Sequence record: NC_006268.1
Length of the DNA: 64,000 nt
Direction: 5' to 3' (one strand)
Shown: positions 5,271 to 62,384 of the stretch, one piece after another
Position numbering within the stretch: the first letter of the stretch is position 1
How the letters are laid out: each line of letters opens with the position of its first letter
The notes under the pieces: model-generated
The model's database searches: none
Told to the model about the DNA's origin: nothing
Seen by the model: only the letters and a program-made list of their open reading frames with translations
Program-made: the position numbers and the translations under genes

Positions 5271-5379
5271 CTTTTTTTAGAAAAATTCTATCTTTTACTT
5301 ATAATACTTTACGGCTTTTAGGAGAGGATTCTCGATTCAAACTGCGTAAATTTACAGCTATAATACCGTAGGAATTGAG

Positions 5380-5400
5380 GGAAAGTTTTATAAGTATAAA
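5380..5400 (+). promoter_or_regulatory. Strong BRE-TATA promoter variant
   Basis: ggaaagttttataagtataaa upstream of 5431. Confidence 0.75.
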
Positions 5401-5430
5401 AAACAAAGTATAAAATCGGTGAGTTGATAT

Positions 5431-6394: not shown

Positions 6395-7171
6395 GTGATG
6401 ATAGTCAGACTAGTATCATATTCGCCTGATGGTGAAAAGGTAGTAGCTATTGCGGCTAAAATGAGTAGGAGTAGGAAAGGTTGGGATTATCATGAAAAAG
6501 AAATGACTGATGAAGAGATTGAGACATGGATTAGGGATGCGATTCTACATGGGTATTGGTCTGTGTTAGAGCATTCAGTTTATACTTTTTCTATTGAGGG
6601 AATTTCTAGGGTTGCGTCTCATCAGCTTGTTAGGCATAGAATAGCCTCTTATACGCAAATGTCTCACAGGTTTGCTAGGCCAATAGATGAATATTATAAG
6701 CCAATAATACCTATTAGCATTAAAAAGAGGGATGTTCATGAGCTAGTTAACAAAGCTTACAATAATGCTTATGAAATTTATTATGAATTATTGAAGAGCG
6801 GAATACCCGAAGAGGATGCACGTTATGTTTTACCAAACGCTGTTAATACAAACATCGTAGTAACTATGAATGCTAGGGAATTATATAATTTCTTTTCCCT
6901 AAGGCTCTGTTCAAGAGCTCAATGGGAAATTAGAGCAATTGCATGGAGAATGTTAGAGGAAGTAAAGAAAGTTCACCCAAGATTATTTAGATATGCTGGA
7001 CCAAACTGCATAATACATGAGAATTTCATAAGAAATGAGTATATAACTTTAGATGATGTGCTTAAAAATCACAATATAGAGTTTATATCCCAAAGATGTA
7101 TTGAAGGAGTTAATAGGGATGGAATTATAAAATGCATCATTAACTCACGTGGGGTTATTAACTCGATTTGA
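6395..7171 (+). CDS. thyX: Flavin-dependent thymidylate synthase
   Basis: ThyX signature [11 protein letters not shown], plus GHxSVLEH-like HGYWSVLEH and [12 protein letters not shown]. Confidence 0.96.
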
Positions 7172-7230: not shown

Positions 7231-7286
7231 TGATCACTAAATTTTTCCCTTTTTTAAGTTTCATTAGTACGAGAAAAATTCATGAC

Positions 7287-7334
7287 GGTAGTAAATTTAC
7301 AGAATTGTCATTACAATTCTACAAATTTATGGAA
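7287..7334. repeat. 48-bp palindromic element (box-TTGTCATTACAA-box)
   Basis: ggtagtaaatttacagaa ttgtcattacaa ttctacaaatttatggaa. Confidence 0.85.
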
Positions 7335-7467
7335 ACCCCTTTTTTCCCTTATGTTTTTATGACTATAATGTTATGTTAACATGTAATTTTACGTTTTTCA
7401 CTATGGAGCTTATGATAGAAAGTTTTATAAGCTTAAATGACCATACTAATAATCGGTGGGAAACATG
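7335..7467 (+). promoter_or_regulatory. Triplicated promoter cassette, copy 1 (BRE-TATA AGAAAGTTTTATAAGCTTAAA at 7417-7437, SD GGTGG)
   Basis: Collinear similarity with 9372-9503 and 14120-14251. Confidence 0.85.
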
Positions 7468-7934: not shown

Positions 7935-8798
7935 ATGAAGATCGTTTTAGGCCTGCCTGATGAAAGAGTGAAGTTATGGAAGTTAGGTGTACCGTTAATG
8001 ATTAATCAGTTGGTATGGGACAATGTAGAATGGGAAAATGAAACATGGGTAGATTCTGGTGGCTATCAAATAATGGTTAGAAAAATGCAGATTAGTGTAG
8101 ATGCCGTATTAGATAAATACAAGAGGCTTGATGCAGACTATTACATTAGTCTCGATATACCTGCAACACCTTGCGAAAAGCCTTCAGAGCTTAATTTCAA
8201 GCACTTTGAGTACTTATACACGAGACTAGATAAGAATATAATACCAGTCATTCACGCTTATGATGTTGAAAGTATTAAAAAGGCTATTGATTTCTACTCT
8301 CAATATACGGATTATATCGCCTTTGGTGGGATAGTTCCACCATCTCTTAATAAGGTAGCTAGCCAAAAGCTAGCAGTTGCAATGTACCGCCTTGTTAGGA
8401 AAGAATGGAAGGGTAAAATTCACGTTTTAGGTGCTGGTTCTCCTTTCATGAGAAAGGTTTTTTATGATGCTGATAGTGTTGACACATCAACTTATAGAGT
8501 AAAGGCAATACATGGTATGGTGTTATTGCCTGGAAAAGGAGAAAGATATGTTGGAGAGAGAAAAATAAGTTGGGGGGCTAGACGAATTAGTGAAGATGAA
8601 CTTGAATCGCTAAAGGCTTTTCTAGAGAAGACTCACTACCCATTTCCTATAAGGGTTGATAATTGGATAGATAGATCACTTGTTAACGCATGGGTTTTGT
8701 TACACAGTGAGTATGAGGAAGATAATCCTCTTATCAGATATGCACACAACATAACAGACCCAGAGGCTGAGATAAATGAGTTATGTAGAAAGCTGTGA
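7935..8798 (+). CDS. tRNA-guanine transglycosylase-fold protein, DpdA-like (probable DNA 7-deazaguanine inserting enzyme)
   Basis: TGT motifs DSGGYQ, SLDIP, PVIH, FGG, HVLGAG, DSVDTSTY. No CxCxxC Zn site and no PUA domain. Confidence 0.85.
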   Translation: MKIVLGLPDERVKLWKLGVPLMINQLVWDNVEWENETWVDSGGYQIMVRKMQISVDAVLDKYKRLDADYYISLDIPATPCEKPSELNFKHFEYLYTRLDKNIIPVIHAYDVESIKKAIDFYSQYTDYIAFGGIVPPSLNKVASQKLAVAMYRLVRKEWKGKIHVLGAGSPFMRKVFYDADSVDTSTYRVKAIHGMVLLPGKGERYVGERKISWGARRISEDELESLKAFLEKTHYPFPIRVDNWIDRSLVNAWVLLHSEYEEDNPLIRYAHNITDPEAEINELCRKL

Positions 8799-9339
8799 AC
8801 ACTTAGAGAAATATCTTGGCTCAAATAATGAACCAATAATAAAAAAGCCTGGCTTTGACCCATTCCAACACTCTGTCGTAAGGAAATGGCATGAGTACTT
8901 TCTCAATAACTGGTATTCCAAAAAAGAAAAAGAAATAGCGCTTTTACTGCCTTGCACATCAGTTAAGCCTTATAATAGGTCAGCTACTCATAAATTAGCA
9001 TACTCGTTATTGAGGAAATATAAACTTGAGGATAAGGTTCAGGTTTACTCTGTCTCTGAGCCGATGTTGTTAGTCCCTAGAGAATTAGAGAACTGTTACC
9101 CTTTCAATTCTTATGATTATCCCCCTTCTTTGATGACTGAAGAAGAAAAACAAGAGTTTATCAGACTACTTTCCATTGCCTTATCTCACATTCACAAGAT
9201 TCATAAAAGAATAGTGGCAGTTTTGCCTAAGCATCATTACAAGATAGTTTATGAGGCTTCTAAAAACATCCCAATCGAACTTTATCCTTATGGCAAATTA
9301 GCTTTTAAAACGATAGCAAATGTTATAATGAAGATATGA
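8776..9339 (+). CDS. Archaeosine synthase ArcS-like (DUF5591) protein
   Basis: Exact ArcS motif PC-x3-KPY-x2-S-x2-H (PCTSVKPYNRSATH) plus SEPMLLVPRELE; overlaps the TGT-fold gene by 23 nt. Confidence 0.85.
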   Translation: MSYVESCEHLEKYLGSNNEPIIKKPGFDPFQHSVVRKWHEYFLNNWYSKKEKEIALLLPCTSVKPYNRSATHKLAYSLLRKYKLEDKVQVYSVSEPMLLVPRELENCYPFNSYDYPPSLMTEEEKQEFIRLLSIALSHIHKIHKRIVAVLPKHHYKIVYEASKNIPIELYPYGKLAFKTIANVIMKI

Positions 9340-9348
9340 ACAACTATA

Positions 9349-9371
9349 GACAATTCACCAATTTTATAGAA
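9349..9371. repeat. Right half of the palindromic element
   Basis: gacaa ttcaccaattttatagaa, 10 nt after the ArcS-like stop. Confidence 0.7.
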
Positions 9372-9503
9372 GCCCCTTTTTCCCCTTGTGTCTTTTGTTA
9401 CTACCGTTTATATTTTCACGTAATTTTACGTATTTGACTATGAAGCTCATGGTAGAAAGTTTTATAAGCTTAAAGTGTCACAGTGATAATCGGTGGGAAA
9501 ATG
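9372..9503 (+). promoter_or_regulatory. Triplicated promoter cassette, copy 2 (BRE-TATA at 9454-9474)
   Basis: Drives the multi-RHH array; identical 21-bp core. Confidence 0.85.
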
Positions 9504-9821
9504 GCAGAAAACGAAACCATAAAACTTGTAACTTTCAGATGCGAAGATAGTCTGTTTTTAAAGCTTGAGGAAGAGGCTAAAAAAGCTAACACCACTAAAA
9601 CGGCAATTATAAAGGCTGCAGTGACACGGCTTTTACAGCACAGTATTGATGAGATAAGGGAGTTAAACAAAAGAACTCCGACCTATTCGGGCAAACGCGT
9701 AATCACAATAATGCTTCCTGAGAGTCTTAACACACAACTAAATGCTATTGCAGAAAAAATAAGTACCAACAAGAGTGACTTGATAAGGACTGCGATAGTA
9801 GCTTATTTCAAGATAGCATAA
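9483..9821 (+). CDS. Tandem ribbon-helix-helix protein (2 RHH modules)
   Basis: LVTFRCEDSLFLKLEEEAKKANTTKTAIIKAAV and VITIMLPESLNTQLNAIAEKISTNKSDLIRTAI; likely start ATG 9501. Confidence 0.85.
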   Translation: MIIGGKMAENETIKLVTFRCEDSLFLKLEEEAKKANTTKTAIIKAAVTRLLQHSIDEIRELNKRTPTYSGKRVITIMLPESLNTQLNAIAEKISTNKSDLIRTAIVAYFKIA

Positions 9822-9824
9822 GAG

Positions 9825-10919
9825 GTGGCAAAGATGGCATATTTACGCTTTCCAATGCGTATCTCTTTACTTAATAAAGTAAATGAAGAAGCTGCCCGCT
9901 TAAATGTAAAACGAACACTTTTGCTGAGAGCTGCAATTCACGCATTTATCGAAAACCCGCCAGAGACTATACAACCATTACCAACTCCAATCGGCGGATT
10001 TGGGCGAAAAGAATCAATAAAAGTTTTCTTAACATTGCCAAAAGACACTTTAGAAAAAATTCGTTCTTACGCTGCTGCAAGAGGACTATCAATAAGAAAT
10101 GTAGCAGAGAAGGCAGTAGCTGATTTTCTTAACTTGTCTGATGAACAGAAACTAATTTATATAAATAAGGAGATGGAAAGACTTGCAGAGAAGAGAAAGG
10201 GAAAAATAGACGAAGAGTCTACACTACAATTGCTAGAGCCCGAGGCTTCAAAAGATCCTTCTCTACTGGTTCCAACAAGTTTCAAATGTGTAGATGACTT
10301 ACATAAGCTACTTGCAAAAGAGGCATGTGAAAGGGGAACAACTGCAAGTGAGCTCGTGAGAAGAGCTGTTGAAGAATTTTTGAAAAAATATGGCGATAAC
10401 CTTGAGGAAATCAAAAAGCTATATGAGGTTGCTAAAGACCTGTATTATATGGAGGTTGAGGACAAAACTTGTACTTTAAAAATACCAGTGTATATGACAG
10501 TACAATTAGCAAAAATAGCTAATAAGATGAATGTACCTAAGTCTGCATTAATTCGTCTTGCGATCGTGAAATATCTGAACCTGAGTGACACAAAGCCACA
10601 AAAACACACAAAGCCACAAAAACACATAATCTTCAAATGTGCGGCTAGCCTTGTTTCAATGTTAGAAGAAAAGTCTAAAAAAGCTAACACCGCAAAAGCC
10701 GCAATTGTAAGGGAGGCAGTGAAACAACTTTTACAGCATAGTGCTGATGAGATAAGGGAGTTAAGCAGAAGAAATCCGGCTTGTTCAGCCGACTATCTAG
10801 TTTCCGTAATGCTTCCTGAGAGCCTTAATACTCAGCTAGATATTATTGCAGAAAAAGTAAGGACCACTAAGAACGATCTGATGAGGACTGCATTAGCAGT
10901 TTATTTTAGGCTAGTGTGA
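9825..10919 (+). CDS. Multi-RHH DNA-binding protein (6 RHH modules)
   Basis: Six strand-helix-helix repeats, e.g. PTSFKCVDDLHKLLAKEACERGTTASELVRRAVEEFL; likely start ATG 9834. Confidence 0.85.
   Translation: MAKMAYLRFPMRISLLNKVNEEAARLNVKRTLLLRAAIHAFIENPPETIQPLPTPIGGFGRKESIKVFLTLPKDTLEKIRSYAAARGLSIRNVAEKAVADFLNLSDEQKLIYINKEMERLAEKRKGKIDEESTLQLLEPEASKDPSLLVPTSFKCVDDLHKLLAKEACERGTTASELVRRAVEEFLKKYGDNLEEIKKLYEVAKDLYYMEVEDKTCTLKIPVYMTVQLAKIANKMNVPKSALIRLAIVKYLNLSDTKPQKHTKPQKHIIFKCAASLVSMLEEKSKKANTAKAAIVREAVKQLLQHSADEIRELSRRNPACSADYLVSVMLPESLNTQLDIIAEKVRTTKNDLMRTALAVYFRLV
10588..10623 (+). repeat. Perfect 18-bp tandem duplication in an RHH inter-module linker
   Basis: acacaaagccacaaaaac x2 (TKPQKH twice). 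Confidence 0.9.
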
Positions 10920-10931
10920 GAGGTAACGAAA

Positions 10932-11993
10932 ATGGCGTATTTACACTTATATCTACATAAATCTTTATTAAAGAAAGTAAAGAAAGAAGCATCACGTTTA
11001 AATGTAAAACGAAAACTTTTGATGAGTGCTGCAATTCAGGCATTTGTCGAAAATCCGCCAGAAACCATAAATCTACCGCCAGACTTGAATAACGGATTTG
11101 AACTAACAATTGGCGTTACCTTAGAACTGCCTACCGATGTTGTAGAAAAGATTTATTCTTACGCTATGTCAAAAGGTCTTTCGGCAAAAAAAGTAGCGGA
11201 GATAGCGATAACTACTTTTCTTAGCCTTTCTGATGAACAGAAAATGATCTATATAGATAAGGAGATAAAAAGACTTGAAGAGAAGAGAAAGAGAAAACTA
11301 AGCGAAGAGCGCAAGTTTCAATTTCTGGAAAGTATTGCTTCAAAAGATCCTTCTCGATCAGTTCGAATAAGTTTCAATTGTGTAGATGACTTACATAAAC
11401 TACTTGTAAAAGAGGCACATGTAAGAGGAACAACAGCGAGTGAACTTGTAAGAAGGGCTATTGAAGAATTTTTACAAAACTACTATAAGGGCAAGATAAA
11501 AATAAGAAAGCTGTATGAGGCTACTAAAGACTCGCATTATAGCAAAGCTGGGGGCAAAGTATATGACCTAAAAGTACCTACATATATGCTATTACATTTA
11601 ATGGTAATAGCTGATAATGTGAAGTTGTCTGTGGCTATGCTTATTCGTCTTGCCATTATGAGATATCTAAAGCTGGTTGACATAGAGCCACTAAAACAAG
11701 TAAGCTTCTCATGTGCGGCTAGTCTTATTTTAATGTTAGAGGAGGAGGTTAAAAAAACTAACACCGCAAGAGATGCAATTATAAAGGAGGCAGTGAAACA
11801 ACTTTTACAGCATAGTGTCGATGAGATAAGGGAGTTAAGTAGAGGAACTCCTCCCTATTCAAGCGGCTATGAAGTTTCCGTAAAGCTTCCTGAGAGCCTT
11901 ATCACACAACTAGATGCTATTGCAGAAAAAATAAGGACTAGTAGAAGCAACCTCATAAGAACTGCTTTAGCAGTTTATTTTAGGTTGGTATAA
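10932..11993 (+). CDS. Multi-RHH DNA-binding protein (6 RHH modules), paralog of 9825-10919
   Basis: Collinear similarity to the preceding ORF across all six modules. Confidence 0.85.
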   Translation: MAYLHLYLHKSLLKKVKKEASRLNVKRKLLMSAAIQAFVENPPETINLPPDLNNGFELTIGVTLELPTDVVEKIYSYAMSKGLSAKKVAEIAITTFLSLSDEQKMIYIDKEIKRLEEKRKRKLSEERKFQFLESIASKDPSRSVRISFNCVDDLHKLLVKEAHVRGTTASELVRRAIEEFLQNYYKGKIKIRKLYEATKDSHYSKAGGKVYDLKVPTYMLLHLMVIADNVKLSVAMLIRLAIMRYLKLVDIEPLKQVSFSCAASLILMLEEEVKKTNTARDAIIKEAVKQLLQHSVDEIRELSRGTPPYSSGYEVSVKLPESLITQLDAIAEKIRTSRSNLIRTALAVYFRLV

Positions 11994-11995
11994 GG

Positions 11996-12817
11996 GTGGT
12001 AAAGATGGCATATTTATGCTTTTCAATGCGCAACTCTCTACTTAACAAGGTAAATGAAGAAGCTACCCGCTTAAATGTAAAACGAACACTTTTAATGAAA
12101 GCTGCAATTCAAGCGTTTATTGAAAACCCGCCACAAACCATAAAACCGTTACCAAATGCAATTGGTGGCTTTGGGCGAAAAGAGACAGCAAAAGTTTGTT
12201 TAGCATTACCAAAAGATATCGTAGAAAAGATTTATTCTTATGCTATGTCAAAAGGCCTACCGGCGAGAAAAGTAGCGGAGAAGACAATAGCTGATTTTCT
12301 TAACTTGACTGATAAACAAAAACTAATTTATATAAATAATGAAATAAAAAGAGTTATAGAGAATAGGAAAAGAAAACTAGATAAAGAGCATTCGCTTCAA
12401 TTACTGGAAAATATTGCTTCAAAAGAACCTTATCGGCTAGTTCCAATAAGTTTTAAATGTGTAGATGATCTACATAAACTACTTGCAAAAGAGGCACGTG
12501 AAAGAGGAATAACGGTAAGTGAGCTTGTAAGAAGGGCTATTGATGATCTTTTGCAGAAATATGGTAATAACTTTGAGAAAATCAAAAAGCTGTATGAGGC
12601 TGCTAAACATCTGTATTATATCGAAGTTTCGGCTAAGGATTGTTCCTTAAAAGTGCCTGCATATATGCTATTACAGCTAACTAAAATAGCTGATAAGGTG
12701 AAGTTGCCTAGGACTATACTCATTCGCCTTGCAATTGTGAGATATCTGAACTTGGTTGACGTACATCAAGAGGTTATACAAAGTGTTAGCAGCGCAAACA
12801 TAACACTAGCAGCGTGA
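11996..12817 (+). CDS. Multi-RHH DNA-binding protein (4 RHH modules)
   Basis: Paralog of modules 1-4 of 9825-10919; likely start ATG 12005. Confidence 0.85.
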   Translation: MVKMAYLCFSMRNSLLNKVNEEATRLNVKRTLLMKAAIQAFIENPPQTIKPLPNAIGGFGRKETAKVCLALPKDIVEKIYSYAMSKGLPARKVAEKTIADFLNLTDKQKLIYINNEIKRVIENRKRKLDKEHSLQLLENIASKEPYRLVPISFKCVDDLHKLLAKEARERGITVSELVRRAIDDLLQKYGNNFEKIKKLYEAAKHLYYIEVSAKDCSLKVPAYMLLQLTKIADKVKLPRTILIRLAIVRYLNLVDVHQEVIQSVSSANITLAA

Positions 12818-12822
12818 TGTAA

Positions 12823-14067
12823 ATGAAGTCTCTTGAGTTCATTATTCCTAATGCCTTGTTCGATAAAATAAAAGAAGAAGCAGAACGACTTAATGTGACC
12901 GACAAGCTTTTGATTAAGGCAGCTATTATTACGTTTGCCGAAAACCCTTCAGACGCTATAAAACCACTATCATATAATTATAGCAAAAAAGACTTAACGA
13001 GAATTTACTTATCAGTACCAAAAGATATTATTGAAAAGATTCGTCTTTACTCCAGTTCAAAAGGATTTTCAATTAGGAGAATAGTTTGGAGTATGGTAGA
13101 TGATTTCCTTACTCTAGATGATGAGAAGAAAAAGTTCTATATAGACAAAGTAAAAAGAAGATTATCCAGGTTTAGAGATGATCAAAATCGTCTAACAAAA
13201 CTACAAGAGGCTATAGCTTACGAAAATTTTAATGCGCCAATTTCAGCGAGTTTTAAATGTAATCCTCAGTTATACAAACTAATTGAGGATGAGGTAATAA
13301 AAAAACGCACAACAATAAGTGATCTTGTAAGACAGGCTATTGAAGAGTTTCTGAAAAAGTATGGTAATAACTACGAGGAAATCAAAAAACTACATGAGAC
13401 GGCTAATCAATTATTTCCTGAAAAAGGTCCTTGGAAAGGGCGCGCTATAAAGTTGCCTGCGTATATGTTGCTTCAATTAACAAAGATTTCGGAGCAGACG
13501 TCAGTCCCCAGAAGCGCTATTATTCGCCTTGCAATTATGAAACACATGAATTTGTTAAATAAAAGCACCATAGAACAGCAGAAGGTTACAAGAAATGAAG
13601 TATTAAACGATCCGCCAAATGACCCACCATCCAATGATCCCCCACAACAAAATAATAAAGACGAACTTGAGCAAGTAATACGTTTTGTTAATGTATCACT
13701 GCCAGACCCACTTTATAATTTATTAAAGAAATATGTAATGCTTAAGTACAATATTGATGATGAAAGACAGATTAAGCTTGAAGTTAGTAAAATTGTTGCA
13801 AAAGTATTGATACAATGGGCAAGGAGACGCTTCTTTAAGAGGCCTGATATTGAAACTTATGTGATATGGCAAAAGATTTTAGAAGAGCTAAAGACGAGCC
13901 TTTATCCTAGCCTGAGCAGAGGAACAGTGGTGAAGAAGCAGGATATTCAAGATGCAATGAAGGAAATAAAAGATGTTAAAAATATAACAGAGTTATTTGA
14001 AAAATTTAAGAGGCGTGGCTATCTAAAGGAAATCGATAAAGACAACGTTAAAATTCTACTCTTGTAA
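12823..14067 (+). CDS. Multi-RHH protein (4 modules) with NDPP linker and an additional C-terminal domain (possible RHH plus winged helix)
   Basis: Modules 1-4 are paralogous to its neighbours, followed by an NDPPNDPPSNDPP linker. The C-terminus ELFEKFKRRGYLKEIDKDNVKILLL resembles a wHTH wing. Confidence 0.8.
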   Translation: MKSLEFIIPNALFDKIKEEAERLNVTDKLLIKAAIITFAENPSDAIKPLSYNYSKKDLTRIYLSVPKDIIEKIRLYSSSKGFSIRRIVWSMVDDFLTLDDEKKKFYIDKVKRRLSRFRDDQNRLTKLQEAIAYENFNAPISASFKCNPQLYKLIEDEVIKKRTTISDLVRQAIEEFLKKYGNNYEEIKKLHETANQLFPEKGPWKGRAIKLPAYMLLQLTKISEQTSVPRSAIIRLAIMKHMNLLNKSTIEQQKVTRNEVLNDPPNDPPSNDPPQQNNKDELEQVIRFVNVSLPDPLYNLLKKYVMLKYNIDDERQIKLEVSKIVAKVLIQWARRRFFKRPDIETYVIWQKILEELKTSLYPSLSRGTVVKKQDIQDAMKEIKDVKNITELFEKFKRRGYLKEIDKDNVKILLL

Positions 14068-14071
14068 GTTT

Positions 14072-14119
14072 TTCAGTAAAATTACAGAATTGTCATGTTA
14101 GTTCTACAAATTTGTGGAA
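14072..14119. repeat. 48-bp palindromic element
   Basis: ttcagtaaaattacagaa ttgtcatgttag ttctacaaatttgtggaa. Confidence 0.85.
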
Positions 14120-14251
14120 ATCCCTTTTTCCCCTTGTGTTTTTGTGACTATCGTGTTAAATTAACATGTGACTTTACGTATTTGACTATGGAGTTTATGA
14201 GAGAAAGTTTTATAAGCTTAAATGAACACAATAATAATCGGTGAAAAAATG
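14120..14251 (+). promoter_or_regulatory. Triplicated promoter cassette, copy 3 (BRE-TATA at 14202-14222)
   Basis: Identical 21-bp core. Confidence 0.85.
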
Positions 14252-15049
14252 TTTGAGATCCAATCCGAAAAAACACAACTCCACTTAAAGGCAAAAGAAA
14301 AGACTTTAGAAGACTTAGTATATTACACGTTAAGAAACAGCGTTACGTTATATAAGAAAGGCATATTGCCTTTCGCATTGTACAACTACAAAATAGATAG
14401 AATAAAGAAAGATATATCAAAGATTAATCAAACAACATATGCGATAACCTTAAGCGTAAGATTATATAACACTGCCAGCAAAGAAAAACTAAAAATAATG
14501 TTCACTTTCATTTTTGAAATAAATGCCGATCATAGCAGCGAGTACTTGTTTGACCCAGATGAGGCTGAAGATAGATTGTTGATAATAACAATGCCAGGCT
14601 TATCTCCACTAGTTTATGACTTCGCTGACTTTATCGAAAGGGCTGACTTTACCTACGATCCTCTAGCTTATGTTGAATCAAATAAAGAAGTTAAGGAGAA
14701 TATGATAAATGTAGCAATGAAGAAAGTAAAAAGATACACTATACCTATAGGCAATGAGGCCTTTATCGAGGCTGACGTGTTTTATGCAGAGAGGAAAATA
14801 GACTTAGCTGCTGCCAGTATGTTAGGAAGTAATAATTGGACACTTATAGAGAAAAAAGTTAATTTGGCTGATTATAATGATGATATACAGGCTGTGTTAA
14901 AGGCTTATGCTGAAGAGTTGAATGAAACGCTTCACGACCTGATACGAAACGGAGAAACTAAAATATTTGCGATAAAATATAAAGATAAATTGACTATGCG
15001 CCTTATAGCACCAGTTTCAAAAAAGGAAAACTACCTGTTTGCCACATAG
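14222..15049 (+). CDS. Hypothetical protein
   Basis: Long ORF; likely start ATG 14249 behind the conserved promoter cassette and GGTGA SD. Confidence 0.8.
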   Translation: MNTIIIGEKMFEIQSEKTQLHLKAKEKTLEDLVYYTLRNSVTLYKKGILPFALYNYKIDRIKKDISKINQTTYAITLSVRLYNTASKEKLKIMFTFIFEINADHSSEYLFDPDEAEDRLLIITMPGLSPLVYDFADFIERADFTYDPLAYVESNKEVKENMINVAMKKVKRYTIPIGNEAFIEADVFYAERKIDLAAASMLGSNNWTLIEKKVNLADYNDDIQAVLKAYAEELNETLHDLIRNGETKIFAIKYKDKLTMRLIAPVSKKENYLFAT

Positions 15050-16040
15050 GTGGCCCATCATGCCTTACTTAACGTTTAGAATCCCACGCGGTCTAGTTGA
15101 AACAATGAAAACACTTCAAGAGAAGCGACAAGAAACTCAAGACCTAATAGTCACTAGGGCCTTGGAGAAATTTTTTGAAAAATACAAAAATGAAAGCTTC
15201 AGAATTGCGCATCGAGAAGTAAAGAAATTAGAGCCAAAGCTTACTGCTGATTCGCCACCACTTGAGGATCTAGTTACTGTTTCATTGTCAGATGATATGG
15301 TAAAGAGGCTAAATGAATACATAGAAAAGAATAAAGTGAGCTCTAGGGATTTGGTTGTTTCTGCCGCGCTCACTGATTACCTTTATGATCTTACTATAAG
15401 AAGAAAGGAGAAAGCAGAAATTTCTTTTCCCGTCAGTAGCGAGATTTACAGAAAGCTCAAAAATATATTACAATTTACCTCAAAGGGTATGAAGGATATT
15501 GTGTCAGATGCCATAAAATGGTTTTTAGATAATTATGGGGACTATGACTTTGCTCATATAATTAAGAATAGGATAGAAAATGAGGATGAAGTGTACAAGG
15601 GAGATTCGGTCATTACGACAATGATACCGAGTCGCCTTAAGAGACGTCTTTATAATTATGCACATAAGAACGGAGTTCCAATGGTTATCGCATTTCGTGT
15701 TGCGATAATTCTGTACTTAAAAAAGGTTGAGGAAGGTAAGATAAAGCTTAGTGAGGCTAAGAATGAGGAGGTAAAGCAAGATACGCAAAAGGAAAAACAC
15801 ATAAACGAAATTGTTGAATCACTAGATAAATTGCAAAAAGAGCTTAAGGAACTAAAGGATAAAAAAGAAAGAAATGATTCACACGTTCGCCTAGTCAATA
15901 CTAAACTAGAGGTCATAAAATTAGGAATTAAGAGTGGCGCCGAGCCCGATGAGATTATGAATGTAGTAAAGACGCTTGACAAGATGGTGGATGAGGCAAA
16001 GGAAAAGAAGGAAACGTTAATAAAAGATAATAATTCGTGA
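15039..16040 (+). CDS. Multi-RHH protein (4 modules) with C-terminal coiled coil
   Basis: e.g. YLTFRIPRGLVETMKTLQEKRQETQDLIVTRALEKFF and VITTMIPSRLKRRLYNYAHKNGVPMVIAFRVAI; likely start ATG 15060. Confidence 0.8.
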   Translation: MPHRWPIMPYLTFRIPRGLVETMKTLQEKRQETQDLIVTRALEKFFEKYKNESFRIAHREVKKLEPKLTADSPPLEDLVTVSLSDDMVKRLNEYIEKNKVSSRDLVVSAALTDYLYDLTIRRKEKAEISFPVSSEIYRKLKNILQFTSKGMKDIVSDAIKWFLDNYGDYDFAHIIKNRIENEDEVYKGDSVITTMIPSRLKRRLYNYAHKNGVPMVIAFRVAIILYLKKVEEGKIKLSEAKNEEVKQDTQKEKHINEIVESLDKLQKELKELKDKKERNDSHVRLVNTKLEVIKLGIKSGAEPDEIMNVVKTLDKMVDEAKEKKETLIKDNNS

Positions 16041-17642: not shown

Positions 17643-17975
17643 TTGCAATTTTACCATATGAGTGGGCACACATTAGAACTCATCCTAAAGCCCATTGATT
17701 TTCGAAAAGCTACAACAAAAGAAGAAAAAGAAGCTATAAAAAAATATGTTAACAGAAATTATAGTATAATAGAAGTTAATAAAAATGGGCAAGAAATAGA
17801 AATAAAAATCGCATATGAGAAACTACCAGATGCTGTTTTAATCAAAGACAGCTTAATAAATGATTGCGTATTAAATTACAAGATTGGTAGACTCGTAATT
17901 AAGAGTACTGGAATGGCTATTAAACTTGTCCCTGGGAAGCTTGTTGAACGTAAACCAGTCTCTACTTCATTATAG
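17643..17975 (+). CDS. Hypothetical protein
   Basis: ORF only; likely start ATG 17658. Confidence 0.65.
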   Translation: MQFYHMSGHTLELILKPIDFRKATTKEEKEAIKKYVNRNYSIIEVNKNGQEIEIKIAYEKLPDAVLIKDSLINDCVLNYKIGRLVIKSTGMAIKLVPGKLVERKPVSTSL

Positions 17976-17994
17976 AAAGTTTTATAAGTTTGAA
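17974..17994 (+). promoter_or_regulatory. Strong BRE-TATA promoter variant
   Basis: agaaagttttataagtttgaa upstream of 18020. Confidence 0.75.
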
Positions 17995-18019
17995 TGTTCA
18001 CTAGATTTATGAGGGAAAA

Positions 18020-18322
18020 ATGTTGAAGACAATACCCTTCAAAATAGACTACAAAATGCTCTTCTTAGATCTAGATGAAGAAACGAATGACGTGTATGCT
18101 TACTTGACAGACCCAAACCTAAAGCTGGAAAGGCGTGAAAAATTTAGAGAATTCACGGAATTCAAAAACTTCATTGATGAATTAAGTAGAGACTACATCA
18201 TAAAGCCTGTAGCTGGCTATGTCAATCAAAATGGTAATGAGCCTAAACTATCATTTTTGATAGTTGTACTATTTAAAAAGCCTGTAGCTGCTGATGTTCA
18301 ATATACAACAACAGTGAATTAA
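18020..18322 (+). CDS. Hypothetical protein
   Basis: 100 aa; preceded by the AGAAAGTTTTATAAG promoter. Confidence 0.75.
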   Translation: MLKTIPFKIDYKMLFLDLDEETNDVYAYLTDPNLKLERREKFREFTEFKNFIDELSRDYIIKPVAGYVNQNGNEPKLSFLIVVLFKKPVAADVQYTTTVN

Positions 18323-19120: not shown

Positions 19121-19639
19121 ATGATTTTCAGTGATAGAGATTTAAAATATTACTTGGAAAAGGGATGGATAAAGATTGAGCCGTTAAGAGAAGACACTAT
19201 TAGGGAAAATGGGGTAGATTTAAGGATTGGTAACGAGATTGTTAGATTCAAGAAAAATAGGATTTTTGATCCTGACAAAGATTCCATAGATGATTTTATA
19301 GAGAAAGAGGTGGGGAATGAGTTTATAATAAATCCCCATGAGCATGTATTATTAGTTACAGAAGAATATGTAAAATTGCCTAATGATGTAATGGCATTCG
19401 TAAATCTTAGATCAACATTTGCTAGATTAGGTCTTTTCATTCCTCCAACTATCGTAGATGCAGGATTTGAAGGACAATTAACTATAGAGTTAGTAGGATC
19501 AGAATTCCCAATAAAACTAAAATATGGAATGAGATTTATCCACCTAATCTTCGCAAAAACACTAACACCAGTTGAAAAGCCATATAATGGAAAATATCAG
19601 AAACAAAGAGGAGTGACGCCGGCTAAGCTTTTAAGTTGA
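19121..19639 (+). CDS. dcd: dCTP deaminase (dUTPase superfamily)
   Basis: MIFSDRDL start, [40 protein letters not shown]. Confidence 0.9.
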
Positions 19640-19644
19640 CGTTT

Positions 19645-19692
19645 TTCTACCAATTTACAGAATTGTCATGACAATTCTGTAATTTTGGTGAA
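19645..19692. repeat. 48-bp palindromic element
   Basis: ttctaccaatttacagaa ttgtcatgacaa ttctgtaattttggtgaa, 5 nt after the dcd stop. Confidence 0.9.
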
Positions 19693-28237: not shown

Positions 28238-30511
28238 TTATAAGAGTTGTGTCTGTGCTCTTTGCGTTGTTGTGCTAGAAGAAAGTACTGATGGTGCTGC
28301 TGCTATTGCTGCATCACCTACTACATTTATTACTGCGTTTAAAGCATTAACTGCAGCATCATACGTTGCGTTTTGTGTGAAGTTTTGACCTGTAATCGTG
28401 CTTAATGCATTGATGAGATTTAGATAATATTTTGCTTGTTCTTTATACTGTATTGCAGCATTCTTATCTCCATTTTTTAAAGCCTCATATGCTTTTGCAG
28501 CATAATCATATAAAGAGATTAGCAAACCATTCATCTTCATTGTAAATGTGCTTCCTGGCTCTTGTGCCAAAGCCATTATGTAAGGGGCATATTGTGGTGC
28601 TGCAGCTATTGCATCTGCATAATCATTATTCATCAGATAGTTTGCGACTGTTTGATTATATTGCACCTGTACTTCTTGTGATGAATTATTTGGTGAGAAT
28701 CCTGATACGATGTTATTAATGTAAGTGCTTAATCCATTAAGGTATGGATTATTAGTATTTGCTAATGCTGAAAGTTGATCAACAATGTTTTGTGGATTTT
28801 GGCTCTGGATAAATGCTGTGTTAAGCTCTTGTATCAAGTTCTGAACTTGATTAATCGTACTTATTGCTTGATCAATATCTGCTGTATCGTTAGTGTATGA
28901 TTTTAATTGATTCAATATCTGAAGGGCCTCATTCAGATTACCGCTTTGTAGTGCATTTTGAAGATTTGCAGTTAGACTCTGCGTGCTTGTACCTACTTGC
29001 TGCTGTGCGCTTTGTAATAATTGTGCTACAGTATTTGCCTCATTGCTTAGATAATTGGTTAAATACGAAGTGATTGGATTGCTGCCTACTTGGTTTGCAA
29101 TTTGTTGCAATTGGTTTGCAATTTGTTGCAGTGTATTAACATCTGATAAAGTGTATTGCTTCTTATTTTGTTCTTGCTGAATTGTGTTAGTAATATTATT
29201 TAATTGCTGCTGTACGCTACTCAATATCTGAATTGCCTGAGAGATGGTATTTGCATCTTGAGAATCACCTATTTGATTGGCAGTTTGTTCACCACTCTGT
29301 AAGGCGGTGATTGCTGCATTTATATTACCATTCTGCAAATCGTTTTGTACTTGGCTAATTAGACTTTGGAATTGTTGCTGTAATTGTTGTAATTGTTTCT
29401 GTTGTTGCTGCTGTAAGTAGTTTTGTATGTTAGTTTGTACTTGTTGCGCAGTACTCGCTAAATTATTTATATAGGTAGATAAGTAAGAGGTAATTGTGTT
29501 ATTACCAATACTATTGTTTATGTTGTTTAATGTACTAATAGCATTTTGAATAGTCTGTAGATCACTTTGTGTGTAGCTACTTTTGTTAGCTTCTTGTTGT
29601 ATTGTACTGGCAACACTACTTAATTGTTGCTGTATGTTATTCAAGATCTGTACTGCCTGTGAAATAGTACTTGCAGCTTGCGTATAACTAATTTGATTTG
29701 CGAGTTGACCGCCACTCTGTAAGGCAGAAAGGGCTCCACTTATGTTACCACTCTGTAAATCATTCTCAGCTTGAGAAATGTAGTTCTGTACTTGCTGCGT
29801 ATTTGGTCCAGTACTGCCTCCGCCACCGCCAGAACCGCCGCCGGAGTTTGGATTGTTATTTCCTCCACCACCGCCAGAGTTTGGCGGACTGGAACTACCC
29901 CCACCACCGCCAGAACCACCACCAGAATTTGGATTAGAACTACCCCCACCACCGCCAGAACCAGGGCTCGAGCTGTTTGGTGAGTTGTTAGAACTGCCTG
30001 ATTGGTTATTAAGGTAGTTTTGTATTTTTTGTTGAACTGATTGTGCTTGTTGATATAGACTGTTTAAATAATTTGCAAGAGGACCAGCGTATGGATTTCC
30101 ACCATTTGCTTCTGCGTCTAAGCCATTAACAACATTCTCCAAATTATTTACAATAGTACTAATTGTGTCCAAATCATTTTTTGTATACGAACTTTGTTGT
30201 TGTAATTGAAGTATTGTGTTTCTATATTGATCATAATTATATGCAGTAAGAACTTTTAGGACTTGCTCCGCATCATAAGCATCACCTTGATTACCAATTT
30301 GCTTATCATATTGTATTATTCCGTTTAGAATATCTTGTACATCAGCAGGAGAAACACCAACACTAACGATTTGCCCATTTTGAACTGTTTGTGTACATTG
30401 AGCAGGGCCTTGTCCAGTACTGTATAGTGGAGGAGGGTTGTACGCTTCAAATGGAATTTGGTAAGCCATTAACCAACCTTGATTTGTGCATGGTTGCGAA
30501 GATTCTGACAT
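28238..30511 (-). CDS. Q/N-rich helical repeat protein with Gly/Ser linker, probable structural/filament protein
   Basis: A GGGGSS/NPNSGGG low-complexity tract and about 3 internal helical repeats (QNDLQSGNI...ISQA.QIL). Confidence 0.8.
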   Translation of the reverse strand: MSESSQPCTNQGWLMAYQIPFEAYNPPPLYSTGQGPAQCTQTVQNGQIVSVGVSPADVQDILNGIIQYDKQIGNQGDAYDAEQVLKVLTAYNYDQYRNTILQLQQQSSYTKNDLDTISTIVNNLENVVNGLDAEANGGNPYAGPLANYLNSLYQQAQSVQQKIQNYLNNQSGSSNNSPNSSSPGSGGGGGSSNPNSGGGSGGGGGSSSPPNSGGGGGNNNPNSGGGSGGGGGSTGPNTQQVQNYISQAENDLQSGNISGALSALQSGGQLANQISYTQAASTISQAVQILNNIQQQLSSVASTIQQEANKSSYTQSDLQTIQNAISTLNNINNSIGNNTITSYLSTYINNLASTAQQVQTNIQNYLQQQQQKQLQQLQQQFQSLISQVQNDLQNGNINAAITALQSGEQTANQIGDSQDANTISQAIQILSSVQQQLNNITNTIQQEQNKKQYTLSDVNTLQQIANQLQQIANQVGSNPITSYLTNYLSNEANTVAQLLQSAQQQVGTSTQSLTANLQNALQSGNLNEALQILNQLKSYTNDTADIDQAISTINQVQNLIQELNTAFIQSQNPQNIVDQLSALANTNNPYLNGLSTYINNIVSGFSPNNSSQEVQVQYNQTVANYLMNNDYADAIAAAPQYAPYIMALAQEPGSTFTMKMNGLLISLYDYAAKAYEALKNGDKNAAIQYKEQAKYYLNLINALSTITGQNFTQNATYDAAVNALNAVINVVGDAAIAAAPSVLSSSTTTQRAQTQLL

Positions 30512-30571: not shown

Positions 30572-30657
30572 TTCGGTAAATTTACCAAATTCTTACTTGT
30601 TGAACATATTTTGGTAAATTTGCTGAATTATCATGACAATTCGGTAGATTTGAAGAA
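30572..30657. repeat. Single box (30572-30589) plus full 48-bp element (30610-30657)
   Basis: ttcggtaaatttaccaaa; tttggtaaatttgctgaa ttatcatgacaa ttcggtagatttgaagaa. Confidence 0.85.
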
Positions 30658-36548: not shown

Positions 36549-37097
36549 ATGGCAAAAAAGGAGAATGAACAACAACAGGCTGCGAAAGCATCTGAGAAAT
36601 CTATCGTAGCAAGGCTTGATCCTCTCCTAGTCGCTAGAAGCCTAGAACAAGCAGTAATGTCTGCACGAGTTCCTACAGACAACCTGGTGGAAAAGGATTT
36701 ACAAGCCGCTAACCAACTTGTAGCAGCAGTTGCAAAGGATATCGAAGAATTGGTAAAGCCAGTTTACCTTGAAGGATGGCAGAGATTCTCAATATCTGCA
36801 TCAACGCTAGAGGCAGACTTCAGTAGAATACTTACATCGATTCTTGAGGTGTTAGAATCATATCTCATTGAAATAAGGAAGTACATTCAAACAAGACTAA
36901 GAGAGGCCCTAGAGGCAAGAGATGTTGAAAAACTAAGACAATATGGCTATATGCTAACCATTTTACAAAGGGCTATCGTCATCGCAGTTTATAACATATT
37001 ACAATCTATTGTAGGTAAAATAAAGGTCAACTTGCCTCTAACATATGGTTCACAAGAATACAATCACGCTGTAATTGGAGTTGCGCACTTAGACTAA
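36549..37097 (+). CDS. Hypothetical helical protein
   Basis: 182-aa ORF followed by a T-run. Confidence 0.8.
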   Translation: MAKKENEQQQAAKASEKSIVARLDPLLVARSLEQAVMSARVPTDNLVEKDLQAANQLVAAVAKDIEELVKPVYLEGWQRFSISASTLEADFSRILTSILEVLESYLIEIRKYIQTRLREALEARDVEKLRQYGYMLTILQRAIVIAVYNILQSIVGKIKVNLPLTYGSQEYNHAVIGVAHLD

Positions 37098-37233
37098 TTT
37101 TTTCGAACTTTTGAAACCATTTAATGCTTTATTTTTCACGTAATAAGTTCGAAGTTCCTGTATATAGCAAAAGTTAGAATTTCGAAAGTGAAAGTAGATG
37201 AGTGAAAACCTTTGGTAAATTTACTGAAGTCAT
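37095..37233 (+). repeat. 139-bp intergenic direct repeat, copy 1
   Basis: 6 mismatches versus 50622-50760; starts exactly at a TAA stop codon. Confidence 0.95.
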
Positions 37234-37256
37234 GATAATTCTGTAGATTTATAGAA
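37211..37256. repeat. Palindromic element with 10-bp spacer
   Basis: tttggtaaatttactgaa gtcatgataa ttctgtagatttatagaa. Confidence 0.8.
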
Positions 37257-42482: not shown

Positions 42483-42564
42483 TAAGTGTTATCAATATAG
42501 ACATAGTTGTAAAAATTAATAAACTTTACTTTTTCACATCGTAAGCTAGGTATGAGTGAAACCC

Positions 42565-42612
42565 TTCTCCAAAACTGGAGAATTGTAATTACAGTTCTGC
42601 AAATTTGGTAAA
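42565..42612. repeat. 48-bp palindromic element
   Basis: ttctccaaaactggagaa ttgtaattacag ttctgcaaatttggtaaa. Confidence 0.8.
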
Positions 42613-47620: not shown

Positions 47621-47971
47621 TTATTGTGAAGAAGTTTGAGAAGATTTTTCAATTACTTCTTTGTAAAAAATTTCTAGCCACTTGTCTATATAAAGTGCTA
47701 TAGCTGTTCTTATGATCACAGCAGGCGTAACGTTTCTCCTCTTTGCTAGTTCTTCTATTGCTTCGACCAGATTACGATCTAATTTCATTACCTTTATATG
47801 CCTTTTTCCTGGCTTAATGTAATACTTATCAATTGGGTTTTGTAAATATTCGACTAATGCCTCATTTATTAGCTGTGCTTGATCTTTTTTGAGAAAGTTT
47901 GACACTTTTTGAAGACTGTCAAATAGGTAGTTGTCCAGAGGGAATCTAACTTTAATCTTCTGCCCTGCCAT
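47621..47971 (-). CDS. Tandem RHH protein (2 modules)
   Basis: IKVRFPLDNYLFDSLQKVSNFLKKDQAQLINEAL and IKVMKLDRNLVEAIEELAKRRNVTPAVIIRTAI. Confidence 0.85.
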   Translation of the reverse strand: MAGQKIKVRFPLDNYLFDSLQKVSNFLKKDQAQLINEALVEYLQNPIDKYYIKPGKRHIKVMKLDRNLVEAIEELAKRRNVTPAVIIRTAIALYIDKWLEIFYKEVIEKSSQTSSQ

Positions 47972-50156: not shown

Positions 50157-50624
50157 GTGATGCGAAACGTTTTTAAACAAAAGATAGAAAAAATAAAAAT
50201 GATGACAACGATCAATGCATTTCAACTGGATGAGCTGAAGACAAAGCTATACTATGAGGCCTTTGCTGCTGGAATGCAATCAATAATAAATGAATTTTAT
50301 AAAAAAGGTATCTCACCTATTCAAATTAGCGATGAATATGTTCTTGATGATGACTACTTTAATCAACAAGTCACATTTGACGATAATGGTACATTCAAGA
50401 TAATAAGTACAATAAGGCATTACAGCCTAAATGGCGAAAAAGAAATCTTAATTGATTTTATCTACACACAAGGTGAACAAAAGGCAACAATGCAAATAAT
50501 TGCGAGAACTAATGATAACATATTTGTTGGACCAGAGATTGATTATCAAAAATACTTAGAGATCTATTACGATGTGGTAGATAAGCTGGCCTCTGAACTT
50601 GATTCTGAGCTTGATAAGGAATAA
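50157..50624 (+). CDS. Hypothetical acidic protein
   Basis: ORF; true start likely one of the downstream ATGs near 50199. Confidence 0.75.
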   Translation: MMRNVFKQKIEKIKMMTTINAFQLDELKTKLYYEAFAAGMQSIINEFYKKGISPIQISDEYVLDDDYFNQQVTFDDNGTFKIISTIRHYSLNGEKEILIDFIYTQGEQKATMQIIARTNDNIFVGPEIDYQKYLEIYYDVVDKLASELDSELDKE

Positions 50625-50760
50625 TTTTTTCGAACTTTTGAAATCACTTAACGCTTTATTTTTCACGTAATAAGTTCGAAGTTCCTGTATATAGCAAAAG
50701 TTCGAAATTCGAAAGTGAAAGCAGATGAGTGAAAACCTTTGGTAAATTTACTGAAGTCAT
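50622..50760 (+). repeat. 139-bp intergenic direct repeat, copy 2
   Basis: 6 mismatches versus 37095-37233; contains a 12-bp inverted repeat 50629-50640/50695-50706. Confidence 0.95.
50738..50760. repeat. Left half of the palindromic element
   Basis: tttggtaaatttactgaa gtcat, abutting the 3' end of the alpha-class methylase. Confidence 0.75.
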
Positions 50761-50767
50761 AGCAAAT

Positions 50768-55257: not shown

Positions 55258-55299
55258 TAAGTGATATCATATGTCGTAATATTTTAAATTTTTAGGCTT

Positions 55300-55347
55300 T
55301 TCTCCAAAATTACCAAATTGTCATGACAATTCGGCAAATTGGTAGAA
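55300..55347. repeat. 48-bp palindromic element
   Basis: ttctccaaaattaccaaa ttgtcatgacaa ttcggcaaattggtagaa. Confidence 0.9.
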
Positions 55348-57306: not shown

Positions 57307-57370
57307 TTTGTAACTGTTATTAATCCCACGCTCTTATTTTTTTCCGCGGTACAGTAGTGGGTCACATTCG

Positions 57371-57418
57371 TTCTGTAAATTGGTAGAATTGTCATGACAA
57401 TTCTACCAATTTACAGAA
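57371..57418. repeat. Perfect 48-bp palindrome (type copy of the element)
   Basis: ttctgtaaattggtagaattgtcatgacaattctaccaatttacagaa equals its own reverse complement. Confidence 0.97.
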
Positions 57419-61772: not shown

Positions 61773-61864
61773 ATTAATCTATTTCTTTATGTGTCATTTT
61801 ATAAATTTTTATCAAAGACCTCTCTTTGCTTCTTTGCCAACTCATCGTTTTTAGATTTCCTCTT

Positions 61865-61903
61865 TTTACAGAATTGTCATGACAATTCAGCAAATTTGGA
61901 GAA
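61865..61903. repeat. Palindromic element with degenerate left box
   Basis: tttacagaa ttgtcatgacaa ttcagcaaatttggagaa. Confidence 0.85.
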
Positions 61904-61937: not shown

Positions 61938-62384
61938 GTGTTTCTATCTACACGTTTTCTTCCGTCATCTTTTACGTTACTCATGGAAGAAAACTTTAAA
62001 TATAAAAAAGTTAACATAATATATGGTGAGAAAATGTTAGTCCAAACAGATAAGATTTCTCATGAAAGGATTACAAATCTGTTGGAAAACTCAATTCAAC
62101 TACTTACTGCTTCAACAGAAACTAAAAAATTGCGCACTATAAGAACAAACCTTAGTAATGTTATAAACAACATCTCGAGGGTAATGCTTTTACTAGAAAA
62201 AAGAGAAACCACAGAGGCTGAAAAAGCATACGTTCTTCTTCAATTCGCCAGGAAATTAGCAGTTTCAGAAAAGGCAAAAATAGATGAGGTAATAAAAGGG
62301 AAGAGAAAAGAAGAATTAATAAAGGACAATCTTAATAGCATTAAGATATTGTTGTGTGAAGTTGAAAAGCTGATGAAGAGGTGA
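61938..62384 (+). CDS. Hypothetical helical protein
   Basis: Likely start ATG 62034 after TTTAAATA and GGTGAG SD. Confidence 0.7.
   Translation: MFLSTRFLPSSFTLLMEENFKYKKVNIIYGEKMLVQTDKISHERITNLLENSIQLLTASTETKKLRTIRTNLSNVINNISRVMLLLEKRETTEAEKAYVLLQFARKLAVSEKAKIDEVIKGKRKEELIKDNLNSIKILLCEVEKLMKR

Follow-up and report, generated by a model that had tools for sequence, protein, structure and literature searches.

Sulfolobus virus STSV1 (NC_006268; 75,294 bp, circular) carries an array of genes for proteins built from tandem ribbon–helix–helix (RHH) modules. The array lies within the 64,000 nucleotides (nt) of this genome that were analysed here, referred to as the window, for which the record coordinate equals the window coordinate + 11,294. 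Its members are the open reading frames (ORFs) ORF20, 21, 22, 23, 24 and 26, each deposited as a 'hypothetical protein'. When the ORF of 364 amino acids (aa) containing ORF21 was compared by tblastn with phage and archaeal-virus records, STSV1 matched at 99.7 % and STSV2 at 86.8 % identity, with STSV4 and STSV3 fragments matching at lower identity; the STSV1 copy in IMG/VR was 100 % identical. The counterparts in STSV2 (STSV2_17 to STSV2_23) carry the annotation 'PHA02938 superfamily', and some metagenomic copies bear the NCBI name 'ribbon-helix-helix protein, CopG family'. In PHROGs, ORF21, ORF24 and ORF26 belong to phrog_9615 (unknown function) and ORF20 to phrog_876 ('transcriptional repressor').

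Pfam RHH_1 matched ORF20–24 with 31.8–66.8 bits (ORF20 33.8, ORF21 66.8), above the gathering cut-off of 20.5, and ORF26 with 18.5 bits, slightly under it. A module profile made from the six ORF21 modules was run on all 238 window ORFs of at least 40 aa and found 2, 6, 6, 4 and 4 modules in ORF20–24 (45.2 and 44.9 bits in ORF20, six matches of 58–64 bits in ORF21) as well as four weaker matches in ORF26. An hhalign comparison of the ORF26 family with the module alignment yielded four matches and no more at E 2e-6 to 9e-6 (probability 83–90 %), the next having an E-value of 0.28, and the same kind of comparison picked up an additional RHH-like module in the ORF24 tails (E 2.4e-5, probability 76 %). 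The array therefore holds 26 solid modules and one weaker one, well above chance and in agreement with an earlier note, made by reading the letters of the window, which had counted 2, 6, 6, 4, 4 and 4 modules and had suspected an extra module in ORF24 followed by a tail resembling a winged helix–turn–helix. That note had also stated that modules occur mostly in even numbers, which applies to the genes with two, four or six modules but not to the ORF24 type with its odd, orphan fifth module. Its span of 9483–16040 does contain the six RHH genes, but ORF25, which lies within it, is not one of them: as a candidate hidden RHH protein ORF25 was rejected, having no Pfam family and an hhalign probability of 2.7 % against the module profile. 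ORF25 belongs to PHROG 28589 (unknown function), and the position between the array and ORF26 is likewise filled in STSV2, STSV4 and the metagenomic contig L010, which makes it a syntenic partner.

The modules are strand–helix–helix units of ~40–45 aa that are recognized by curated profiles. At the start of helix B, where a G/N-x-S/T turn is expected, the turns in the module alignment read NVKR, GLSI, GTTA, NVPK, NTAK and RTTK; these turns, the profile matches and the antiparallel ribbon predicted by the models described below place the proteins in the RHH superfamily. All ORF20–24 and ORF26 proteins are basic, with isoelectric points (pI) of 9.0–9.7 and net charges of +4 to +19.

Homologues and GenBank place the protein starts at MAENET (9501), MAYLRF (9834), MAYLCF (12005) and MPYLTF (15060), the long ORFs started by GTG or TTG exceeding the likely proteins by 3–7 codons. 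With starts at MAYL... or MPYL..., the first strand of each protein forms its extreme N-terminus. The genes ORF20–24 are separated by gaps of 5–12 nt, a ribosome-binding site (RBS) is annotated for each, and GenBank records one TATA box, upstream of the set; the short gaps, the RBSs and the lone TATA box fit a single operon.

Table 1. Positions of the array genes, their modules and the associated DNA elements in the window (module positions are residues)
Feature	Position	Strand	Description
Promoter cassette of the RHH operon	9327..9500	+	B recognition element (BRE)/TATA 'AGAAAGTTTTATAAGCTTAAA' and RBS; GenBank TATA box, RBS
Other ~170 bp cassette copies	7290-7463, 14075-14248		Upstream of ORF17 and ORF25
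Further copies of the 55-nt BRE/TATA core	550-604, 5372-5426, 17966-18020
ORF20	9501..9821	+	106 aa; two RHH modules (14-57, 73-111 of the 112-aa ORF from 9483)
ORF21	9834..10919	+	361 aa; six RHH modules (4-47, 64-107, 148-191, 214-255, 266-309, 324-364 of the 364-aa ORF from 9825)
ORF22	10932..11993	+	353 aa; six RHH modules (1-44, 59-102, 143-185, 212-252, 254-298, 313-353); ORF21 paralogue, 59 % identity
ORF23	12005..12817	+	270 aa; four RHH modules (4-46, 64-106, 148-191, 215-255 of the ORF from 11996)
ORF24	12823..14067	+	414 aa; four RHH modules (2-43, 58-101, 140-182, 208-247), proline-rich disordered linker (247-291), orphan fifth RHH-like module (~286-336), winged-helix tail (343-411)
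ORF25	14249..15049	+	266 aa; acidic, pI 5.8; not RHH
ORF26	15060..16040	+	326 aa; four divergent RHH modules (about 10-52, 79-115, 125-168, 190-232 of the ORF from 15039), charged helical C-terminal tail
Palindromic element	7278-7334, 14063-14119, 19636-19692, 30601-30657, 42556-42612, 55291-55347, 57362-57418, 61847-61903		Eight copies

Predicted fold and pairing of the modules

RHH proteins are normally non-covalent dimers, and recognition of multiple sites is achieved by cooperativity between dimers. Two of the array proteins, ORF21 and ORF24, were modelled with AlphaFold2 (AF2) as single chains, using shallow alignments (18 sequences for ORF21 and six for ORF24). The ORF21 model (mean predicted local distance difference test (pLDDT) 81.4, predicted template modelling score (pTM) 0.41) consisted of six strand–helix–helix units with low-confidence or helical linkers between them. 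Each module contributed one strand, and DSSP assigned all six as beta; in a monomer model, this implies that the modules pair with one another. Pairing was deduced from these strand assignments and from contiguous matches to TraY-like proteins. The ORF24 model (pLDDT 76.8, pTM 0.36) had four paired strands followed by the disordered proline-rich linker. Its fifth module was predicted as two helices with no strand, as might be expected of a half-site that lacks a partner, and the tail had the H-E-H-H-E-E topology of a winged helix (WH). Foldseek matched this tail to the CUL1 WHB and MCM8 WH domains with a probability of 0.97–0.98, as the earlier description of the tail had anticipated.

Foldseek searches of the PDB with the ORF21 model returned chains of TraY, from the F-plasmid relaxosome, first (template modelling score (TM) on the target 0.56–0.70 over 95–114 columns), with the permuted single-chain Arc, DndE and AvtR lower in the list. 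As each match spans one small unit, the E-values were weak, the best being 7e-3. With ORF24 the TraY matches had TM scores of 0.60–0.74 and root-mean-square deviations (rmsd) of 2.7–3.5 Å over 94–101 contiguous columns, and were followed by AvtR and VirC2. As ORF24 lacks M5–M6 and yet matches TraY over ~100 contiguous residues, the matching unit must consist of adjacent modules (M1–M2 or M3–M4), which leaves the other two modules to pair with each other. Two RHH modules are therefore predicted to fold together as a single-chain pseudo-dimer, and at the level of prediction both the RHH fold (with TraY and AvtR as the nearest solved structures) and the single-chain pseudo-dimers that had been proposed from the letters were borne out, the adjacent modules pairing and resembling TraY with TM scores of 0.56–0.74.

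Models in BFVD agreed with this. An independent model of a two-module STSV2 protein of 106 aa superposed on ORF21 with a TM score of 0.95 and an rmsd of 1.2 Å, the ORF26 model Q684E8 matched the ORF21 model with an E-value of 3.9e-9, and many two-module proteins of 95–120 aa from rudiviruses and lipothrixviruses also matched it. The linkers within predicted pairs measure 20–24 aa in the ORF21 AF2 model; a linker of ~15 aa, shorter than these, reportedly sufficed in engineered single-chain Arc. A phmmer search of all PDB sequences with ORF20 and ORF26 found no RHH protein and none homologous to AvtR, so that the array resembles AvtR-type proteins only in its fold and architecture. An ankyrin match to the tail of ORF26, which is probably a coiled coil, was dismissed as low-complexity noise.

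Family history and selection

The ORF20 protein is 56–58 % identical to the C-terminal ~100 residues of ORF21 and ORF22, and ORF23 is 69 % identical to residues 1–255 of ORF21, which confirmed that the 112-aa gene corresponds to modules 5–6, and the 273-aa gene to modules 1–4, of the six-module genes. The first 250 residues of ORF24 showed 43 % identity in the paralogue alignment. When 64 modules of STSV1, STSV2, STSV4 and the divergent metagenomic array L007 were placed in a tree, M1 to M6 each formed a clade of its own, and the modules of two-module genes grouped with M5 and M6. The clades and the block matches together indicate that six modules equal four plus two, entire blocks having been fused or split. 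The module shuffling that had been suspected earlier thus takes the form of gene duplication combined with fusion or fission of two- and four-module blocks. The linker at the 4 + 2 junction is polymorphic in length: in ORF21 the M4–M5 linker contains an 18-nt tandem repeat (10588–10626; 2.2 copies, 100 % match) that encodes TKPQKH twice, and orthologues have differing numbers of similar units.

The composition of the array varies between relatives. If a winged-helix tail is denoted by t, the STSV1 array reads 2, 6, 6, 4, 4+1+t, then ORF25 and then 4, whilst that of STSV2 reads 2, 6, 6, 4+1+t, 4+1, 2, 4+1+t, that of STSV4 2, 4, 4+1+t and that of L010 2, 4+1+t, 4+1. Contig L008, which represents a second lineage with 22–32 % identity, has 4, one non-RHH gene, 4, 2 and 4. 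Across five further arrays, module counts were 2, 4 or 6 in every member but the ORF24 type. The two-module gene, the ORF24 type, ORF25 and ORF26 make up a constant core, while plain four- and six-module genes come and go; close relatives have two to six genes in the array proper, or four to eight when the ORF26-type gene is counted. Synteny is conserved on both sides, with thyX, tgt-like and DUF5591 genes upstream and a gene for a membrane protein of the polysaccharide-synthesis type downstream.

An exhaustive phmmer search with ORF21 against 1.84 billion representatives gave 10 hits, one of which, P0028 (6411 aa, with threonine-rich repeats), was rejected as a compositional artefact. Word-seeded searches found 21 proteins with ORF21, four with ORF26 and 32 with a four-module profile, all of them STSV-like or from one second related lineage, and a scan of species-representative genomes with ORF23 found nothing. 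The short hot-spring contigs that carry all of the relatives are evidently viral. On the sequences searched, the poly-RHH family is tiny and appears confined to STSV-like viruses.

Orthologues had ratios of nonsynonymous to synonymous substitution rates (dN/dS) of 0.24–0.43, the upper value belonging to ORF22 and its STSV2 orthologue STSV2_18, and the ORF21/ORF22 paralogue pair had 0.57. The orthologue values show that the genes are under purifying selection, and the whole range of 0.24–0.57 ruled out pseudogenes or decaying duplicates. Within module classes, mean entropy was 1.37 bits at alternate strand positions, 0.72 at inward strand positions and ~0.8 in the helices; compared with all other columns, alternate strand positions were more variable (1.37 versus 0.82 bits; Mann–Whitney p = 0.001), and among the STSV1 paralogues alone 54 % of these positions differed versus 40 % elsewhere (Fisher p = 0.01). 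The alternate positions were assigned to the groove side on the basis of their alternation with conserved hydrophobic ones. The earlier observation that paralogues differ most in the strands holds in that groove-facing positions are enriched for variation, but some exposed helix positions vary as much. The pattern, a moderate effect, would fit diverging DNA specificities.

Proposed function of the array

Among the DNA-binding folds of crenarchaeal viruses, RHH is the most common. We consider it probable that ORF20–24 and ORF26 are DNA-binding proteins composed of covalently linked single-chain RHH dimers. Neighbouring modules (M1–M2, M3–M4 and M5–M6) would each fold into one pseudo-dimeric RHH unit, the two non-identical strands of which would form an antiparallel ribbon entering a major groove. 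One, two or three such units would be tethered by linkers, the M2–M3 linker being conserved, helical and ~45 aa long and the M4–M5 linker short and variable in length, and one chain would bind across several adjacent subsites, recognizing a composite site that is long and asymmetric. A single chain would dispense with the concentration-dependent dimerization and the dimer–dimer cooperativity used by Arc, CopG, MetJ and omega. The ORF24 type, with its orphan module and winged helix, and ORF26, with its coiled-coil-like tail, would themselves dimerize to give two-fold symmetric assemblies; dimerization of the ORF24 type is implied by its odd fifth module, and both types probably dimerize. The products of the ORF20–24 operon most likely regulate transcription, with specificities for viral and/or host promoters that diverge from one paralogue to another, and the operon probably autoregulates through the promoter cassette that it shares with other genes.

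This cassette of ~170 bp is present in three copies (mean column identity 82 %), and its 55-nt BRE/TATA core occurs at six promoters (Table 1), which suggests that the genes concerned, the RHH operon among them, are regulated together. A second repeated element is a palindrome of ~44–48 bp (core GAATTGTCATGACAATTC, with arms to ...AAATTTACAG/CTGTAAATTT...), of which the window contains eight copies versus 0.03 expected. By the ORF list all eight are intergenic, and the element was also found in STSV2. Several copies are followed by a C/T-rich run, CCCCTTTTTCCCC. One copy (14075..14119) directly follows the stop codon of ORF24 and is upstream of the promoter of ORF25, whilst upstream of ORF20 the palindrome is degenerate and its right half alone survives. 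As some copies lie between divergent genes, the palindrome is not simply a terminator. It is a candidate binding site and, being suited to a binder with two-fold symmetry, a likelier one for the predicted ORF24 dimer than for the asymmetric monomers. Tandem Repeats Finder detected no iteron array in the window. A scan for promoters and terminators of the bacterial type gave counts no higher than those in shuffled sequences, although such a scan is not applicable to archaea.

Several points weigh against the reading as single-chain DNA-binding dimers. AF2 runs on single chains pair strands only within a chain, which leaves room for pairing between chains; the alignments behind the models are shallow (18 and six sequences), and the low pTM values (0.41 and 0.36) mean that the arrangement of one unit relative to another is not fixed. 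The hypervariability of the strands is modest, some exposed helix columns being equally variable. The sole conspicuous repeated element is the palindrome, which is ill-suited to an asymmetric monomer, and no repeated DNA motif was found whose copies are spaced as a chain of two or three tethered units would require. The literature covered holds no expression data on the array genes, and that their products bind DNA is something we infer.

The known systems nearest to the array share its fold and differ in how units are joined. AvtR (Acidianus filamentous virus 6 gp29; PDB 4hv0) is a monomeric regulator with two RHH domains that oligomerizes along ~100 bp of DNA (PMC5569661), and SIFV gp29, of the aCcr1 clade, likewise carries a pair of RHH motifs on a single chain (PMC9976892). 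Proteins of this type make up a monomeric pseudo-dimer from two modules of one chain, as is predicted for the array, and they too come from viruses of Sulfolobales, and AvtR was among the matches of both the ORF21 and the ORF24 model; however, they stop at one unit, whereas the array chains fuse two or three, or two with an orphan module and a winged helix. TraY is a monomer that contains a whole RHH dimer in one polypeptide, three copies of which form a train on DNA (PMC12117103). It was the best structural match (9f0x, 9f0y, 9f11 etc.; TM on the target 0.56–0.74, rmsd 2.7–4.3 Å, 8–17 % identity), and in the model ORF21 looks like a TraY train made covalent. TraY, however, is an accessory factor of bacterial conjugation whose units are separate chains, and the STSV1 locus lacks a relaxase or oriT context. 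DndE and VirC2, both also among the Foldseek matches, are natural tandem RHH single chains with two divergent RHH units and a linker of 10–20 aa, which permits asymmetric targets, but they act with other partners (the DndD ABC ATPase; T-DNA processing) and never have more than two modules. Arc, MetJ, CopG and omega have the same fold, insert a strand ribbon into the major groove and place several dimers on adjacent subsites, though with identical, non-covalently associated chains, whereas the array would hard-wire non-identical strands and so allow asymmetric sites; the engineered single-chain Arc (PDB 1u9p) was among the Foldseek matches. The comparison of poly-RHH arrays with zinc-finger arrays, in which one unit serves one subsite, is an analogy only.

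It is rather unlikely, but worth weighing, that the proteins are architectural or genome-organizing and coat, bend or bridge viral DNA instead of regulating particular genes, with replication-origin or packaging complexes, centromere binding of the ParG/omega/ParR type or a relaxosome 'train' like that of TraY as possible variants. The best structural match, TraY, is indeed an accessory DNA-bending protein forming a train of three units, and AvtR likewise spreads over ~100 bp. The many modules per genome (26–27 in the array), the strongly basic proteins and a palindrome that occurs eight times and always between genes would also suit such a role. On the other hand, the groove-facing strand positions diverge among paralogues, as expected of distinct specificities and not of generic coating, and a gene number that ranges from two to six among close relatives would be surprising if the role were structural and essential. 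In the literature covered, from which the original virion analyses are missing, the proteins are not described as virion components. RHH centromere-binding proteins (ParG, omega, ParR) are accompanied by an adjacent NTPase and iterated repeats; the locus has neither, and no ParA- or ParM-type partner gene adjoins the array.

A more far-reaching version of the regulatory reading seems unlikely to hold in full. In it, each RHH unit reads a subsite of its own (~25–35 bp for a six-module chain), new specificities arise by duplicating, fusing or splitting two- and four-module blocks, and one or more of the proteins also act as the STSV-type repressor of the host cdv/ESCRT division genes, giving giant virus factories. 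Small RHH regulators of the aCcr1/SIRV2 gp21 clade are common to Sulfolobales and their viruses, and viral homologues block cell division. STSV2 likewise blocks division: it arrests the host cell cycle, represses cdvA, ESCRT-III and vps4 and enlarges cells, and Yang et al. reported no aCcr1 homologue in it (PMC9976878), whilst Li et al. (2023; PMC9976892) found in STSV2 a number of diverged gp21-family proteins outside the aCcr1 clade and noted in their Methods that, among the Bicaudaviridae homologues, it is common for a protein to have more than two RHH domains. In the 2023 literature RHH proteins are the only recognized regulators of STSV2, which makes the array a short candidate list for the division-gene repressor.

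We regard as distinctly improbable that the modules pair between chains, in domain-swapped dimers or open-ended polymers, with the even counts a by-product of duplication of a two-module ancestor. Such pairing is beyond the reach of AF2 monomer runs, the fifth module of ORF24 and the tail of ORF26 already imply intermolecular contacts, and the module tree shows that units duplicated as blocks. Yet the two-module relatives AvtR (4hv0), TraY (9f0x etc.) and SIFV gp29 (an AF2 model; PMC9976892) are monomeric, the linkers inside the predicted pairs are long enough, and module counts are strictly even in every member that is not of the ORF24 type. Very improbable, finally, are antitoxin-like or anti-defence proteins that neutralize host toxins or effectors by protein contact with the RHH fold as a scaffold: viral RHH and helix–turn–helix proteins are among the predicted archaeal anti-defence genes (PMC11065993), but the several weak Pfam matches to CopG_antitoxin, Antitox_RHH, VapB and HicB-like families all fall under the curated cut-offs and map to the core common to RHH domains in general, the array lacks the toxin-like neighbour and the toxin-binding tail that a type II RHH antitoxin would have (the neighbours being RHH genes, ORF25 and the membrane protein of the polysaccharide-synthesis type), and the predicted early or anti-defence candidates of STSV1 in a regulatory-motif study are ORF1, 2, 4, 6, 9, 11 and 72, with ORF20–26 absent.

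Tandem two-module RHH chains, the virus and its genes are already known, Pfam, NCBI and PHROGs recognize the proteins as RHH, and published work has already mentioned their multi-domain build. As far as could be found, the anatomy of the array, the five-module type with a winged helix, the even-number rule and the function had not been worked out earlier, and the gain lies in anatomy and hypotheses, not in a new kind of system. If the chains are single-chain RHH dimers, the array offers a natural series of one, two and three units in which the effects of tethering on specificity, affinity and site length could be studied at 75–80 °C; the series includes the odd five-module form with its winged helix, and the sister virus STSV2 infects a genetically tractable host. 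Designed DNA binders could also be built on poly-RHH chains as a scaffold that is both compact and thermostable.

Further features of the window

Two more genes with RHH-like modules lie outside the array. The first (47621..47971, minus strand, 116 aa) has two modules, matched by the module profile at residues 5–46 and 61–98, with hhalign probabilities of 95.5 and 90.3 % and a Pfam RHH_1 score of 31.4 bits. The second (62381–63256, plus strand, 291 aa) has an RHH-like module that is probable (E 5e-5) and another that is doubtful (E 6e-3), and the BFVD model of its product (Q684A1) also matches the ORF21 model.

Upstream of the array, the thyX, tgt-like and DUF5591 genes (the last with E 1.6e-20) lie at 6395–7171, 7935–8798 and 8776–9339, the last two overlapping, and this order is conserved in STSV2, STSV4 and contig L010. 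The tgt-like gene is annotated as a queuine tRNA-ribosyltransferase and had no Pfam match in the window scan. Together, the tgt-like and DUF5591 genes look like a split pair of the ArcS/TGT type, which suggests DNA modification of the 7-deazaguanine type. No Rfam families or tRNAs were found in the window.

A minus-strand ORF of 757 aa (28238–30511) gave a sub-threshold match to Snf7 (ESCRT-III; E 9e-4, 19.4 bits versus a cut-off of 27.3). The plus strand of this region contains repeats rich in CCGCCA/CCACCA, and the product of the minus-strand gene probably includes a stretch rich in glycine. The Snf7 match may be coiled-coil noise, although it is curious given that STSV-type viruses interfere with the ESCRT division genes of the host. 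The 1549-aa ORF at 42962–47611 (plus strand) has four internal repeats of ~600 nt (families D1, D4, D6, D12 and D15; 61–87 % identity) and only a sub-threshold beta/gamma-crystallin match; it may encode a repetitive structural or adhesin-like protein. Two stretches of 151 nt (37092–37242 and 50619–50769; family D16), 13.5 kb apart and 93 % identical, each end a gene block.

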